Source: Gekko japonicus (Eukaryota). Taken from it: a stretch of DNA of 64,000 bases. Below, piece by piece: positions 12,472-62,830 of the stretch. The stretch lies in the NCBI RefSeq assembly GCF_001447785.1, contig NW_015163111.1, positions 1-64,000 of the forward strand. The letters are read 5' to 3'. The first letter of the stretch is position 1. Every line of letters begins with the position of its first letter. The translations under genes were made by a program, and so were the position numbers. The notes under the pieces are model-generated. The model saw nothing but the letters and a program-made list of their open reading frames with translations. It was not told the origin of the DNA and made no database searches.

Positions 12472-14879
12472 AAGAACATAAGAACATAAGAGACGCCAAT
12501 GTTGGATCAGGCCAAAGGCCCATCCAGTCCAACACTCTGTGTCACACAGTGGCCAGAAATACCAGTGCCATCAGGAGGTCCAGCAGTGGGGCCAGGACAT
12601 TAGAAGCCCTCCCACTGTTGACCCCCCCCCAAGCACCAAGAAGACAGAGCATCACTTGCCCCAGAGCCCCTAGCTATACCTTGTGGCTAATAGCCACTGA
12701 TGGACCTCTGCTCCATATGCTTATCTAATTCCCTTTTGAAGCCGTCCATGCTTGTAGCACCCACCACTTCCTGTGGCAGTGAATTCCATGTGTTAATCAC
12801 TCTTTGGGTGAAGAAATACTTCCTTTTATCCGTTCTAACCCGACCGCTCTGCAGTTTCATGGAGTGCCCACGAGTTCTTGTATTGTGAGAAAGGGAGAAA
12901 AGTACCTCTTTCTCTACCTGCTCTTTCCCATGCATAATCTTATAAACCTCGATCATGTCACCCCTCAGTCGTCTTTTCTCCAAGCTAAAGAGCCCTAAGC
13001 GCTTTAACCTTTCCTCATAGGGAAAGTGTTCCAACCCTTTTATCATTCGAGTTGCCCTTTTCTGCACTTTTTCCAAAGCTATAATATCCTTTTTAAGGTG
13101 TGGTGCCCAGAACTGCACACAGTATTCCAAATGAGGTCTCACCATTGATTTATATAGGGGCATTATTATATTGGCTGATCTGTTTTCAATACCCTTCCTA
13201 ATAATCCCCAGCATAGCATTGGCCTTCTTTATTGCAGTCACACACTGTCTCGACATTTTCAGTGAGTTATCCACTACAACTCCAAGATCTCTCTCTTGCT
13301 CAGTCTCTGCCAGTTCAGACCCCATCAATGTGTATTTATATTTAGGATTTTTGGCTCCAATGTGCATCACCTTGCACTTGGCCACATTGAACCCCATTTG
13401 CCATGTTGACGCCCACTCGCCCATCCTTGACAGATCCCCTTGGAGTGCCTCACAATCCTCACTGGTTTTCACCACCCTGAACAACTTTGTATCATCCGCA
13501 AATTTAGCCACTTCACTGCTTACTCCCATCTCCAAATCATTAATGAACAAGTTAAAAAGCAGTGGACCAAGTACTGATCCCTGCGGTACCCCACTGCTTA
13601 CCACCCTCCACTGAGAAAATTGCCCACCTACACTCACTCTCTGTTTTCTATGAACTAGCCAGTTTTTGATCCATAAAAGGACTTGTCCTTCTATCCCATG
13701 ATTTTTGAGCTTACTTAGGAGCCTTTGATGAGGAACTTTATCAAAAGCTTTCTGGAAGTCAAGGTAAATAATATCTATTGGATCCCCCTTGTCCACATGT
13801 TTGTTCACCCCCTCAAAGAACACTAACAGGTTAGTGAGACAAGATCTTCCCTTACAGAAACCGTGCTGAGTCTGCCTCAATAGGTTTTGTTCATCTATGT
13901 GCCTACTAATTCTTTCCTTAATAATGGTTTCCACCAATTTACCCGGTATCGACGTCAGACTGACTGGCCTGTAATTTCCCGGATCTCCTCTGGAACCCTT
14001 TTTAAAGATGGGAGTGACATTAGCTACCTTCCAATCCTCAGGAATGGAGGCAGATTTTAAGGAAAGATTACATATCTTTGTCAGGAGATCTACAAGTTCA
14101 CATTTGAGTTCTTTCAGAACTCTCGGATGTATGCCATCTGGGCCTGGTGATTTTTCAGTTTTTAAGTTGTCTATCAGTTTTAGGACCTCCTCTCTCGTCA
14201 CCTCAATCTGACTCAGGTCTTCCAACACCCCTCCTGAAATCAGTGGTTCTGGAGTGGGCAAGCACTTCTCATCTTCCACAGTGAAGACGGAGGCAAAAAA
14301 TGCATTTAGCTTCTCAGCCATTTCCCTATCATCCTTCAATACTCCTTTTACCCCTTGGTCGTCCAAGGGCCCCACTGCCTCCCTGGCTGGTTTCCTGTTT
14401 CTAATGTATTTGAAGAAAGTTTTATTGTTGGTTTTTACGTTTTTTGCTATATGCTCCTCATATTCCCTTTTTGCCTGCCTGACCTCAGACTTGCATTTTA
14501 TTTGCCATAGCCTGTGTTCCGTTTTATCAGCCTCACTGTGACTAGCTTTCCACTGCTTAAAGGAATTCTTTTTACTTTTTACAGCCTCCATTACTCTGTT
14601 TGTTAACCATGCAGGCTTTTTCCTATACCTGTTTGTGCCTTTCCTAACCTGCGGAATATATATTTTTTGAGCTTCTAGGATCGTAGTTTTAAATAAATTC
14701 CAAGCTTCCCCAATTGTTTTGACCCTTTCTACTTTTCCTTTCAGTTTCCTCCCCACGTGTCCCCTCATATCAGAGAAATTACCCCTTTTAAAGTTAAAAA
14801 TGGTTGTGTGAGTCTTTTTGGCCAATTCTCTATTTGTACAAATGATGAACTCAACAACATTATGATCACTGTTCCCCAC
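12472..14879 (-). mobile_element. Young 5'-truncated CR1 LINE with open ORF2 (RT) and complete 3'UTR
   Basis: Open 730-codon frame (12687-14879) with PGPDG, NYRPVSLTS, YLDFQKAFDKV, GVPQGSVLGP and FADD motifs. The 3' end carries (TTCTTATG)n repeats. The first codon is GTG at the truncation point. Confidence 0.96.
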
Positions 14880-15440
14880 ACCTCTTCAGGGTAATCGTTC
14901 CACAGAGTGGCAGCCGCAATGGAGGAGGCTTGGCCTCTGGTGATACTGGGTGGGCTATCTTAAGCGGGGGAACAGCCAGTAGATGGCAGCCTGAGGACCG
15001 TAGTTGGCCCATAGGGACATAGGGGAGGAGATGGTCCTTCAAATATGTGACCTCAGGTTGGGAAGAGATTTAAAGGTCATAGCCAGCATTTTGATTTGAA
15101 CTCAGAAACTTAAGTGGCAGCCAACACAGCTGTTTTAAGATACACAAGATAATGTGCCTACCAGCTAGGCCAACAATAGTCGGGCTGCCACATTCTGAAC
15201 CAGCTGAAGTTTCTGGATTGTCTTCAAGGGAAGCTCAATGCAGGACACATTACAGTTTGCCTAACAGCAAGGTTTCAAAAGCATGGATCAGCATAGCCAG
15301 ATCAGTTAAAGGTTAAGAGTAGGTGACCCAGATGCAGATGATAGATGATCAGCCTCCTCCTCACCACATATAAAGTTGGGTCCATGAGCACCCCCAAGCT
15401 CTTGACCTACTCTGCAAATGCCAACTCCACTCCACCCACT
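14880..15440 (-). mobile_element. Degenerate L2 fragment, host of the CR1; its 3' part is at about 12243-12470
   Basis: Similar to 2700-3020 (gctgccacattctgaaccagctg, ttcaagggaagc). Confidence 0.65.
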
Positions 15441-49302: not shown

Positions 49303-49508
49303 TCACACCACTGATTGGCTTGGAGTGGGTATGCTGTCGTAATCATCTGAATAAGTCTGGTACTGGTCAGTGAGAAGAGGCTGATGCAGTTCATCCTTGT
49401 TTCTCCGGGCATGAACGATACATGTGGCACCAGCAAAAATAATTGCAACCAGAATCAGTGCAGTGACAATGGCAATAGTTATGACTTCGGTGACCTGGAG
49501 AGTCCGAG
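49303..49508 (-). CDS. TYRP1: TYRP1 terminal coding exon 8: TM helix and cytoplasmic tail
   Basis: (T)RTLQVTEVITIAIVTALILVAIIFAGATCIVHARRNKDELHQPLLTDQYQTYSDDYDSIPTPSQSVV*. Has the dileucine sorting signal QPLL and C-terminal PDZ ligand SVV. Acceptor ctag|CT. Confidence 0.97.
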
Positions 49509-50299
49509 CTAGGATGAAGCAGAAAAAAGGGGCAGGGTTAAGATGCTGCATTCCCCTGAATATATTGCTTTAGAGATTATGAATGACAAGGGGGGGACCC
49601 GCGATACTCGCGGGGGGGGGAGGCAGAGGAGGAAGCAGGAGGAGGAGGTAAGTACCCCCCCATCCCGCTGGTTCCCCCGTTTCCTTTACCCCCCCTTGAT
49701 CTCCCCTGACCCTGGGGGTGGGGTTTACACATCATACCTACAGTAATGAACATTTGGCAGCTTGCTGACATAAGGTCTGAATGGAGGAGGGCTGACACCA
49801 GCCTGCAAAATACACTCAGGAGTTGAGCCCTAGCCCAAGCCAGAACCTGATAAAAACCCATGTGCTCCTGACCCCTGCAGGAACAAAGGTGCCCTGTCCT
49901 CAAGGAACTGGCCCAGGTCAGCCCAGTTGATCTATAAAGCAGTCAGCGGAAGTGATATATTGGTGACTGTAGGGCAGTGCTGCACCCCAGGGAGGAGAAA
50001 TTAAAGGTCGCTGTCTTGGAGACTATGGAAGAAGAATGCTTATTTCTTGTTGAGGAAAGGGCCTTCTCTTTGTGAATTCTAGCATGAGGCCGAGGAGAAG
50101 CAAAAGTTGCCTGCAGCTAAACCCTTGCAGCACAAAATAGGTTTTCCCAACCCTAGCCAGAATGAAAATCTCTCTCAGGACGTCCCGAGTAATTCATGCA
50201 CTCAAGCTCCGACCTTCACACCAGGGCTTGAAGAAGCACCTGCTCTCCCCTCCTTCTGTCCAGGTACGTTTTTTAACGTCCAGCCAGATGAAGAGAAGA

Positions 50300-51460
50300 G
50301 TTCAGCGCTGTGAAAGCGGCAGTGAGGGAATGGCAGGCGCCGCCTGTTGCCCTTCCCTCCGGAACGGGCGCCGAGGCATTTCCCACGCGACTTGCCAGCA
50401 CACGGATCCCCGAGCAGCACCCCGAGCTCCCCCCCCAAAAATGGTCACCAGTTTCCAGAACATCCCAAACTTCCGCAGGTGTTGTCAGTCCCAGCGAATC
50501 TGTTTCGGTCCCTCCCTCGGCCATTCCAGCTCTGGAAGGGAGAGACGACTGAATTGTGATCCCGCTTGCCGATCCAACCGTACAGGCACTGCAGCAGCCC
50601 GGGGGCCCGTTGCCTGGCGAGCAGGTGCCGCGCCGACTCCGTCTGGAACCCGCCCCCCCCCGGCGCCGGAATGAGCACGCATGCGGCGCTGCTCCCGTTC
50701 AAGGCTCTCTCGCTCTCTCTCCCCCCCCTGGCCTTCGGATGCTCTTAATCAGAACTCCAATCAAACTCTTCCTGGATTTAAACCGCCGGGGACAGATAAT
50801 CCCGGGCCAAGCTGTCCCTTCGCTCTCACCCGAGATGAGCTGCTCGCCGAGGTCGGGGCTGAACCGGGGAGGCCGGTAGCGGCGGCGGCTGTCGGGAACG
50901 CGCGTTGTCCTCCTCCCCCCTCCCTGTCGGTGGAGTGAGAGACCCAGCGGGCAAGCGCAGCCCTCCTCCTCCCTCCACCAGCATCGCCCCCACCGCCTCG
51001 GCCTAGTCAGGGGCATCGGCGGCTCTTCCTCCGGGAACAGATTGCGTGCTTGCTGCCTCAGGCCCCCCCACCTTTCCCGCCCGCCGGCCGTATCAGGACG
51101 CTGAAGGGCCGGGGACACTGCGGCCCGGGCGGGGGAGGCGACGCGACAGAGGAGAGGAAGCCGCGAAGAAGAGCGAGGCCCCGCAGAAAGGCAAGGTGGA
51201 CTGGGGGCGAGGGAAAGAACGCGCCGCCCCTCCTGCAGTCCGCAAACTCCAACCCCCGTTCCAAGAGCGTTCCCCGCGCATGCGCAGGGGACGCTCTTTT
51301 TTATTTTGGCAAATTTAAGGACCCCCAGGATATTTTTCACACTTTTAAGATTTTTGTGCACATGTGGGGACCGCCCCACGTGAGCACAAACCTCTCCCTC
51401 CCCCCCCAGGAGCCCCCGATGTCCGGATTTAAGGATCCGCACAGAGGGGGCCACTTCACT
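50300..51460. promoter_or_regulatory. CpG island in TYRP1 intron 7, promoter-like
   Basis: GC- and CpG-rich against a CpG-poor background. NRF1-type GCGCATGCGCA at about 51276-51286, E-box CACGTG at about 51379, GC boxes, and a minus-strand donor CGG|GTGAGA at 50830. Confidence 0.7.
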
Positions 51461-52359: not shown

Positions 52360-52506
52360 TTGGCCACTGAACTTCATAATTATAGCCCAGGTTTTCTGGT
52401 GCCGTAACAAACATCTCATCATTGGTCATAGGGGGCCAGAACGGGACCATGTTGTATCGTCTGTTGTGTCCAATGGGGGCATTCTCTAGGGGGTATATGG
52501 AGGTAT
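52360..52506 (-). CDS. TYRP1: TYRP1 coding exon 7 (147 bp)
   Basis: (D)[48 protein letters not shown]. Acceptor gtag|AT, donor A|gtaag. Confidence 0.97.
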
Positions 52507-52818
52507 CTACTTTGGGGGGAAAAAGATTCCATTTCAAAAGGCTGTCATAGGTAAGAATGTTAAAAATATATCCTAGATCCTCAGACTTTGAGCCTTCAGC
52601 TTTAAGCAATGAGGCAATAATTCCTACAAAGAATAACTTTCCTTCTGCATATGTATGTTTTGTAGTTGCAGATGTTAAGGACAAAAGGAGGCTCAGGATC
52701 AAATTCTCTGACCATTTTGTGTGTTGAGCAGACGTAGGCTCAGGAGCAAGAATTGCAACTATAATCCATGCAGTTAAAAAGGCAATAGTTATGATTTCAC
52801 TGACTTGGAGATCCTGAA
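52507..52818 (-). other. Duplicated exon-8-like segment in TYRP1 intron 6; candidate alternative acceptor extending exon 7, or a pseudo-exon
   Basis: 52751-52822 aligns ungapped to 49441-49512 at 57/72 nt by hand count. Encodes [23 protein letters not shown]. Acceptor ttcttctag is retained and the frame is open into exon 7. Confidence 0.8.
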
Positions 52819-53808
52819 CTAGAAGAAGCAGGGAAAAATGAGCACAGATGGTATCAGTCTAGAAAGATGCAGTTAAAAGGCTCCATCCATTCAACTACTC
52901 AACTTCCCAACTGCAACAAGAGCAATATGGATGGTTGGATCATAGTGGAGATAACATAAATGAGGACCAGTGAAATTACTGATTTCTTTTTGCATGGCCT
53001 TTTAATATTTCCCCACTACCTAAAACAGCAACAAATGTCTTATCTTCAGATAGCCTTTTGGTTTCCTCAGTAAGCAATCTCCGCCTGTCATCTACAGGAA
53101 GACCACCAAGGAGAGTCTGCCAGCATGTTCTCAAATCATGAGGATGCAGGTGAGGTCCACGGGCCTCAGTGTTTCCCCATGGAAAATAAATGCACATCCA
53201 TGCTGACCACTTCCCTATTGTTTTTCACTGCAGGAGAAGATCACTAAAGGCAGGCAACTTGTTACTTGCTACCATTACCGTTCTTCTTATCAAGGAAACC
53301 CAGATCATCTTCTAGAGATCCTCAGAATACAGTTTGAAAAGCCACATTCTTCAAGCGTGTGCTGAAGCTTATGTGTCTTTCCCATTCCATTTTTAAAATC
53401 TGCATTAGCCCAGTTCCACAGAGAGACTGGCTGCCTCCTGCCGCACCATCTGCTCTTGTTTTGTGTTTGTTAGGGGAACATGACGTGAACTTATGTGATT
53501 TTCCTGCAGTAACAAACAACTCTCGGGACCTGCCAAAACTGGCACTTGCATGGCTCTGAAAATCCATGGCTGTATCCCTTTTTCAGGGCTGCCTTCAAAG
53601 GTGTGGCAATTCTGTGCTGTTTTGCCTTTTTTTGGTCTTTTTGAAAGGATCAATAGAAAAGGGGTCTTGTCTACATTTCTGAATTTATGAAAAAGGAACA
53701 GAGACTTCTCTTGCTGTGATCAGATGACATGGTTAAACACCCCTCAGTCTTGTGATCCCTTTCTGTTACTTATTTGGCATCAACAACTAATACAATAAGT
53801 CCTTCTTT

Positions 53809-54579
<771 letters not shown>

Positions 54580-61429: not shown

Positions 61430-62830
61430 TTTAATTTTATTTATTTAATTTGTACCCCGCCCTCCCCGGAAACAGGTTCAGGGCGGCTTACATTGGTACA
61501 CAAATAACCATTAAAATCCATATTAAAACATTTGAACAATTCAATTACAAATAGACTCGTAAAAACCTAAAATCATAAAGTGCTGGGCATATTTCATTCG
61601 ATACTTCAGATGGTGTACTGAAGAGTGCATACAGACAACAGTTTTCAGCTCAGTGATCTTCCTAAGTCATGTGGCAGCACAGGTCAAATGTCAAAGTTAA
61701 GGGCCAGGACCTATAACTACAATTCTTGGTGGTAGTAGTGAAGGTGGCTCCTTAATTGAAGGCCTGGTGGAAGAGATCCCCACCCCCAAACCGCCCCGAC
61801 TCAAGAACAGGACCTCTGTCTTCGTTGGATTCAGTTTCACCCGGCTCAGTCTAAGCCAACCAGCCACAACTTGCAGTGCCCGGTCCAGATCTTCCAGCCT
61901 GGAGTCTGACTGGCCGCCCAACATTAGGTAGAGCTGGGTGTCATCAGCGTACTGGTGACATCCCAGCTCGTGCCTCCGGGCAATCTGGGCAAGGGGGCGC
62001 ATATAGATGTTGAATAGCATTGGGGAAAGCACTGCCCCTTGAGGCACTCCACACTCCAGCAGGTGCCTCCTGGACCCTTTGTCCCCAACCTTGGAGAAAG
62101 GAAGCAAGCCATTGTAAGGCAAGCCCCTGAATTCCCATGTTGGCGAGGTGGTGGGTCAGTAACAGATGGTCAACCATGTTGAATGCAGCCGACAGGTCTA
62201 ACAACAGTACTGCTGAGCCGCCCCAATCCAGATGCCTCCGGAGGTCGTCTGTGAGGGTGACCGGTGCCGTCTCCATCCCGTGTCCCAGGCGAAATCCAGA
62301 CTGGAAGGGATCTAACATGGAAGTGTCATCCATAAAGCCCAGCAATTGTATCGTCACCGCCCTCTCAATTACTTTGCCCAAATAGGGCAAATTGGAAACT
62401 GGCCAATAGTTAGCCAATTCGGCCGGGTCCAGAGATGTTTTTTTGAGGAGAGGGTGGACCATCACTTCCTTGAGTGCCCCTGTCAACAGTCCCCCAGAGA
62501 GGGACTTGTTGATATTTTCCCTTAGGGCACCTCAAAACCCTTCATGGCCACGGTTTAATAAGCCAAGAAGGGCATGGATCAAGGCTGCACATGGTTGGGC
62601 GTACCATTGAGAGCAATCTGTCGACTTCCTCTAGCCTGAGCAGGCTGAAATGGTCCAAAACTGAGATTGAAGACGTGCATGGAGCCTCGAGTTCACTCAA
62701 CTGTGCTGTGTTTCAACTGTGCTGGGGAGGTCATGGTGGAGCAACAAGACTTTATCCGTGAAATAGCTCGCAAATGCCTTGCAGCCTATTTCCTTAAACA
62801 TGCTGTCCAATCAGCTCCTTGTTTCCAGGT
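61430..62830 (-). mobile_element. L2 LINE RT fragment, frameshifted and internally deleted
   Basis: PLLKKTSLDP..NYWPVSNLP, QSGFR, LLDLSAAF, GVPQGAVLSP and QYADDTQLY spread over two frames; AT-rich tail at about 61430. Confidence 0.92.

Follow-up and report, generated by a model that had tools for sequence, protein, structure and literature searches.

A partial copy of the exon 8 boundary within intron 6 of Gekko japonicus TYRP1, probably a decaying pseudo-exon

Intron 6 of the TYRP1 gene of Gekko japonicus harbors a partial copy of the intron 7/exon 8 boundary of the same gene, most plausibly a neutrally decaying pseudo-exon that was left by an old partial duplication and is removed together with the intron. 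The gene lies in a 64,000-nucleotide stretch of contig NW_015163111.1 (assembly GCF_001447785.1, positions 1 to 64,000; hereafter the window). A sequence-only reading of this DNA had offered two interpretations of the copy: a hidden exon, extending exon 7 in frame and bringing an extra transmembrane (TM) helix into the protein, or the relic of an internal exon duplication. The tests reported here favor the relic and do not support a hidden functional exon. The relic is preferred because a comparison of the copy with exon 8 gives a dN/dS near or above 1, the hydrophobicity retained by the copy does not exceed chance, the spacer that separates the copy from exon 7 lacks codon periodicity, the predicted insert has no credible protein match, and the gene model of the same species is canonical.

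The last five coding exons of TYRP1 (exons 4–8) are located within the window on the minus strand (Table 1), and their five translations are exact substrings of the 530-residue Gekko japonicus TYRP1 protein XP_015262303.1, with exon 7 corresponding exactly to residues 415–462. This protein is 5,6-dihydroxyindole-2-carboxylic acid oxidase. The split codons fit at the last two junctions, where G+AT yields Asp (exons 6/7) and A+CT yields Thr (exons 7/8). Exon 6 aligns to residues 337–395 of the human TYRP1 crystal chain 5M8L (E = 2.9e-34), with all three metal-B histidines present, and exon 7 aligns to residues 396–445 (E = 3.2e-24) of this 446-residue lumenal construct. These exons encode the metal-B site, the C-terminal wrap that completes the lumenal domain, the TM helix and the tail, which places the gene as TYRP1 within the tyrosinase family.

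Table 1. Coordinates, within the window, of the TYRP1 exons and of the features associated with the intron 6 copy
Feature	Position	Strand	Remarks
Exon 4	starts 58358	-	
Exon 5	starts 56726	-	
Exon 6, metal-B histidines	54393..54572	-	phase-1 donor CTG/gtgagt, last base 54393
Branch-point-like CTGAT, A at 52854	52853..52857	-	36 nt upstream of 52818; motif match only
Kept 3' splice-site motif, pyrimidine tract and TAG	52819..52838	-	AG at 52820-52819; would-be first exonic base 52818
Paralogous block, ~97 nt	52741..52837	-	last ~18 nt of intron 7, AG and first ~77 nt of exon 8
24 codons matching the juxtamembrane and TM part of exon 8	52745..52816	-	still hydrophobic
Competing AG, ttcag/G, first base 52813	52814..52815	-	PWM 7.1, second best in the interval; five bases downstream
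Spacer, 79 open codons	52507..52744	-	no exon 8 similarity; 38.7% GC
Exon 7, canonical, 147 nt	52360..52506	-	acceptor tag/AT, first base 52506; donor caa/gtaagt
Exon 8 coding part, TM helix and cytosolic tail to stop	49306..49508	-	parent of the intron 6 copy

Several features of the locus lie outside the copy. The exon 7 acceptor is a NAGNAG site (52507–52512, minus strand), in which an AAG (AG at 52511–52510) is followed by a TAG at 52509–52507; orthologues match the downstream TAG, and splicing at the upstream AAG would insert a single in-frame Val. The first full codon of exon 6 (54568–54570, minus strand) encodes Cys at Gekko position 355, as does XP_015262303.1, in place of the Tyr found at human TYRP1 Tyr362; of 40 aligned TYRP1 proteins, at least 90% have Tyr at the equivalent site, as do the four other geckos for which the region is available. 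Within intron 7, positions 50200–51400 are GC-rich (0.59–0.69 GC), contain long GC-rich open frames and represent a CpG-island candidate. Two retroelement frames for reverse transcriptase (RVT_1) are present on the minus strand, one a 732-codon open reading frame downstream of TYRP1 (12690–14885) and the other a broken frame in the intron upstream of exon 4 (61700–62531).

A sensitive blastn comparison of intron 6 with intron 7 and exon 8 returned a single significant match, in which 52837–52741 aligns to 49528–49431 over 98 columns with 76.5% identity (E = 4.7e-17). No further copy of this block, besides the exon 8 boundary itself, was found within the 64-kb window. The sequence-only reading had reported an ungapped identity of 57/72 nt (52751–52822 versus 49441–49512), a peptide identical to that of exon 8 at 14 of 22 residues, and a similarity that fades after the TM segment. 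The first two figures held on recomputation, with blastn extending the match, and the similarity indeed ends past ~77 exonic nt, dropping to background within ~20 nt. The copy has the same orientation as its parent, lies two introns upstream of exon 8, and differs from it by only one indel despite a divergence of ~24%. The copy thus shows what defines a pseudo-exon from partial exon duplication, a significant nucleotide match to one of the gene's own exons that extends into the flanking intron. Since intronic bases form part of the block, its source was genomic DNA or unspliced RNA (pre-mRNA) and not mRNA. A larger duplication that included intron 7 or exon 7 was ruled out by the lack of any additional blastn similarity in the 64-kb window.

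The anatomy of the copy's acceptor is the natural starting point for the opposite reading, that of a functional alternative 3' splice site. Exon 6 would then be joined to position 52818, producing a 634-residue TYRP1 isoform with an extra helix and ~80 additional residues, whose frame would be kept by selection; on the evidence set out below, we consider this unlikely. The acceptor itself speaks for such an isoform. As had been claimed, it preserves a pyrimidine tract and an AG that would place the first exonic base at 52818, and it has phase 1, the phase of the exon 6 donor whose last base is 54393. Pyrimidines occupy 16 of the 17 positions from -20 to -4, no new purine has entered the tract, and the 40 nt upstream of the acceptor are free of AG, so that none intervenes between the CTGAT motif and the acceptor. 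In a rough position weight matrix (PWM), whose scores are approximate, the copy's AG scored 8.8, the best of 334 AGs in the 4.9 kb from the exon 6 donor to exon 8, compared with 3.9 for the exon 7 acceptor and 7.5 for the exon 8 acceptor. At the level of motifs, the copy thus has what an in-frame extension of exon 7 would show, namely an AG, a pyrimidine tract, a branch-point motif, the matching phase and an open frame, and 'splice-ready' is a fair label at that level.

Nevertheless, the same region holds features that count against a functional isoform. The anatomy behind the splice-ready label stood, but a competing CAG at 52815–52814 had been overlooked; it arose by substitution (TTCAGG in the copy versus CTCGGA in exon 8), and an acceptor at 52813 would be out of frame and reach a TGA after five codons. 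No usable donor is present inside the 312 nt between the copy's acceptor and exon 7, the sole donor-like match being a weak one (7/9) located 14 nt into the copy, and a cassette exon was ruled out on this ground. The first donor that could be used belongs to exon 7, and the resulting exon of 459 nt would be long for an internal exon of a vertebrate.

The reading frame supplies the second argument for a functional isoform. The claimed spacing of 312 nt from 52818 to 52506, comprising 104 codons without a stop, was confirmed, and the other two frames over the same stretch contain 11 and 7 stops. The first 24 codons were already open at the birth of the copy, and the test of the open frame was limited to the 79-codon spacer. 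Only 0.36% of dinucleotide shuffles of the spacer were stop-free, while real intronic windows of 79 codons were open in 2.9% (other introns of the gene), 4.1% (rest of intron 6) and 3.8% (whole window) of cases. With a spacing divisible by three expected once in three by chance, the combined probability of an open and in-frame spacer is ~0.1% by shuffles and 1.0–1.4% by real intronic windows, figures that are tempered by the fact that the case was chosen for its open in-frame features. The spacer is the one odd feature that drift explains poorly; it is unusual, not extreme. Intron 6 contains two more stop-free stretches in the exon 7 frame on the minus strand (52979–53224, 82 codons; 53408–53719, 104 codons), neither with a Pfam match, an indication that open frames of such length are no rarity here.

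The pattern of substitution in the copy resembles that of neutral DNA and argues against a maintained isoform. Twelve of 25 codons differ from exon 8, 11 of them by non-synonymous changes, in agreement with the original remark that most differences are non-synonymous, and dN/dS was 1.08, 1.45 and 1.61 over 22, 24 and 25 codons, respectively. The differences are distributed over the three codon positions as 8/5/4 (hand count), which is not coding-like. In the exon 8 peptide, at most two of the first 30 residues vary among six gecko proteins, and this near-constancy implies that nearly all replacements fell on the copy. The spacer, likewise, shows no codon periodicity: its codon-position chi-square of 7.25 (p = 0.30) exceeds the scores of ~81% of intronic 79-codon windows and of 12% of real exon windows (exon median 14.9). 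Within the limits of a small sample (24 + 79 codons), the copy and the spacer therefore evolve without coding constraint, as pseudo-exons do.

The hydrophobic character of the copied segment had been reported as kept, and on the side of a functional isoform stands the fact that all replacements in its TM core are hydrophobic, with no polar residue introduced. Hydrophobicity on the KD scale reaches 2.35 over 19 residues of the copy, compared with 2.92 in the highest-scoring stretch of that length in the real TM helix and 2.69 within the 24 aligned codons of the parent. To what extent this reflects chance can be judged from simulations in which exon 8 was mutated at random with the observed 17 changes, of which 8 are transitions. 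With transitions making up 0.33, 0.5 and 0.67 of the changes, equal hydrophobicity or a polar-free core was retained in 9%, 15% and 25% of the runs, respectively, and ~80% of the simulated copies stayed stop-free. The retained hydrophobicity mostly follows from the codon table and is not beyond chance (p = 0.09–0.25).

Searches at the protein level revealed no credible relative of the insert, a further point against a functional isoform. When the 152-residue extended exon was compared with 1.84 billion representative proteins by phmmer, tyrosinase-family matches were obtained only through the exon 7 part, and all matches were confined to query residues ~88–152, save for two repeat proteins that were rejected as homologues of the insert, their scores being sums of many weak stretches. 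Residues 1–104 of the insert had no match in a word-indexed search of the 84–266-residue proteins of a 5.8-billion set, and no Pfam family was detected in the insert. AlphaFold modeling of the 152-residue extended exon from its single sequence gave a mean pLDDT of 45, with helices predicted without confidence, and modeling of the canonical Gekko TYRP1 with 40 sequences gave a mean pLDDT of 42.6, too poor to place the junction in three dimensions; the insert was placed by sequence alignments to 5M8L.

By these alignments, the insert would sit between residues 395 and 396 of 5M8L, inside the crystallised lumenal domain and just past the helix that bears the third metal-B histidine; the alignment of exon 6 to 5M8L 337–395 bears out the original placement right after the metal-B site. 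The insert had been predicted to contribute an extra TM helix and other hydrophobic stretches. One TM-grade helix is present, and the next KD peak is 1.09. TYRP1 is a type I membrane protein. Because of this topology, and because the insert has a single TM-grade segment, the one extra pass would divide the fold and put the exon 7-encoded part on the cytosolic side and the sorting tail in the lumen, which counts against a functional isoform; misfolding of an insert-bearing product is more likely than usefulness. If the Gekko lineage did splice exon 6 to 52818 as a minor isoform, with the 312 nt held open by selection, the resulting TYRP1 would cross the membrane twice or be anchored anew and would serve outside catalysis, perhaps in the sorting of melanosomes or as a dominant modulator, a reading that we regard as improbable.

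Gene models also speak against the isoform. XP_015262303.1 uses the canonical junction 54393>52506 and lacks the 104-residue insert. The TYRP1 proteins of Paroedura picta, Eublepharis macularius and Sphaerodactylus townsendi are each 530 residues long, and a 530-residue protein translated from a 2.5-kb Logan contig of a close relative has the canonical junction too. No isoform label is attached to any of the named gecko TYRP1 proteins, including that of Gekko japonicus, and no account of alternative splicing was found in the literature on TYRP1 in geckos. These 530-residue models are weak evidence against common use of the copy, being gene models and not junction counts. The cat "chocolate" intron 6 allele is a possible precedent for insertions at this junction and carries no evidential weight here.

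A second alternative, which we likewise hold to be doubtful, is that the copy acts as a decoy. Its AGs, leading to first bases 52818 and 52813, would divert pre-mRNA to degraded or misfolded products and thereby lower TYRP1, be it by noise or by regulation. The copy does contain the two AGs that score highest in the interval, the true exon 7 acceptor is weak by the same measure, and the early stop that follows 52813 would yield an unproductive transcript. However, strong-looking intronic acceptors that have no donor nearby are usually ignored by the splicing machinery, and here the 312 nt offer nothing beyond the weak 7/9 match, the exon 7 donor being 459 nt away; moreover, the gene models contain the canonical junction only. 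An assembly artefact or a chance resemblance is very unlikely, as mis-assembly or collapse would give near-identical copies and not one of 76.5% identity, the window contains no N, and an E value of 4.7e-17 excludes a chance match.

The copy may be dated, approximately, by a single residue. In the motif TEVITIA, Val is present in all six gecko sequences sampled (Gekko japonicus, G. kuhli, Paroedura, Eublepharis, Sphaerodactylus and the protein of the transcript-length Logan contig), and Ile occupies the same site in every other sauropsid sampled. Exon 8 of Gekko japonicus has GTC (Val, 49484–49486), whereas the intron copy has ATC (Ile, 52794–52796). As the copy carries the pre-gecko state, the duplication probably predates the common ancestor of the sampled gecko families, unless the copy reverted. 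The Jukes–Cantor distance derived from the blastn identity is ~0.28 substitutions per site, which, at an uncalibrated rate, would be about as much as neutral DNA so old should show.

We propose that a copying event in the DNA placed ~100 nt spanning the intron 7/exon 8 boundary into intron 6 without inverting them, and that the copied piece carried the pyrimidine tract, the AG and the juxtamembrane and TM codons. This copying was probably an old event, preceding the split of the sampled gecko families, after which the copy would have drifted at about the neutral rate. Normal splicing would join exon 6 (54393) to exon 7 (52506), so that the copy leaves with the intron; we infer its non-use in RNA, as we do its age. 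The intact AG and tract, the hydrophobicity and the open 312 nt would then be survivals and coincidence rather than maintained features, and any use of the copy's AG would represent splicing noise. Against such a history stand the open spacer with a length divisible by three, the best-scoring AG, the intact tract, the single indel and the absence of a polar change in the TM core. In combination, so many coincidences are improbable if drift alone was at work, though the case was selected for them.

As a relic, the copy is of a kind already known and is ordinary, the mark, open to dating, that a small duplication within a pigmentation gene has left behind. It also cautions that chance can give a pseudo-exon the look of a splice-ready, in-frame exon, and its Ile/Val site could be used as a small phylogenetic marker, or to date the duplication, across intron 6 of geckos. 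Should the junction prove real in RNA, and only then would the copy matter, duplication of the membrane anchor would have supplied a melanogenic enzyme with a membrane helix amid its catalytic domain, and few topologies would have arisen in so unusual a way.

Three known systems and one known gene are relevant for comparison. Mutually exclusive tandem exons share with the present case a duplicated exon sequence within the gene and a conserved acceptor phase, but here the copy is partial and lacks a 5' splice site; it also lies away from its parent and would be unable to replace exon 8, and it does not belong to that class. In-frame alternative 3' splice sites that arise by exonisation also have an upstream AG with its tract, the same phase and a frame open to the constitutive acceptor, but the distance of 312 nt is far beyond those usual for such sites, and a nearer out-of-frame AG competes. 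The TYRP1 gene product of Gekko japonicus itself, XP_015262303.1, is identical over exons 4–8 and has no 104-residue insert. The closest parallel is with intronic pseudo-exons derived from partial intragenic duplication. Unlike these, the copy described here comprises just the 5' part of the last coding exon, with no donor or tail, and landed upstream of the preceding exon, into which it reads in frame, whether or not by coincidence. Like them, it consists of a fragment of the gene's own exon together with the upstream splice signal, shares the orientation of its parent within a nearby intron, has diverged at a near-neutral rate and is absent from the gene model.
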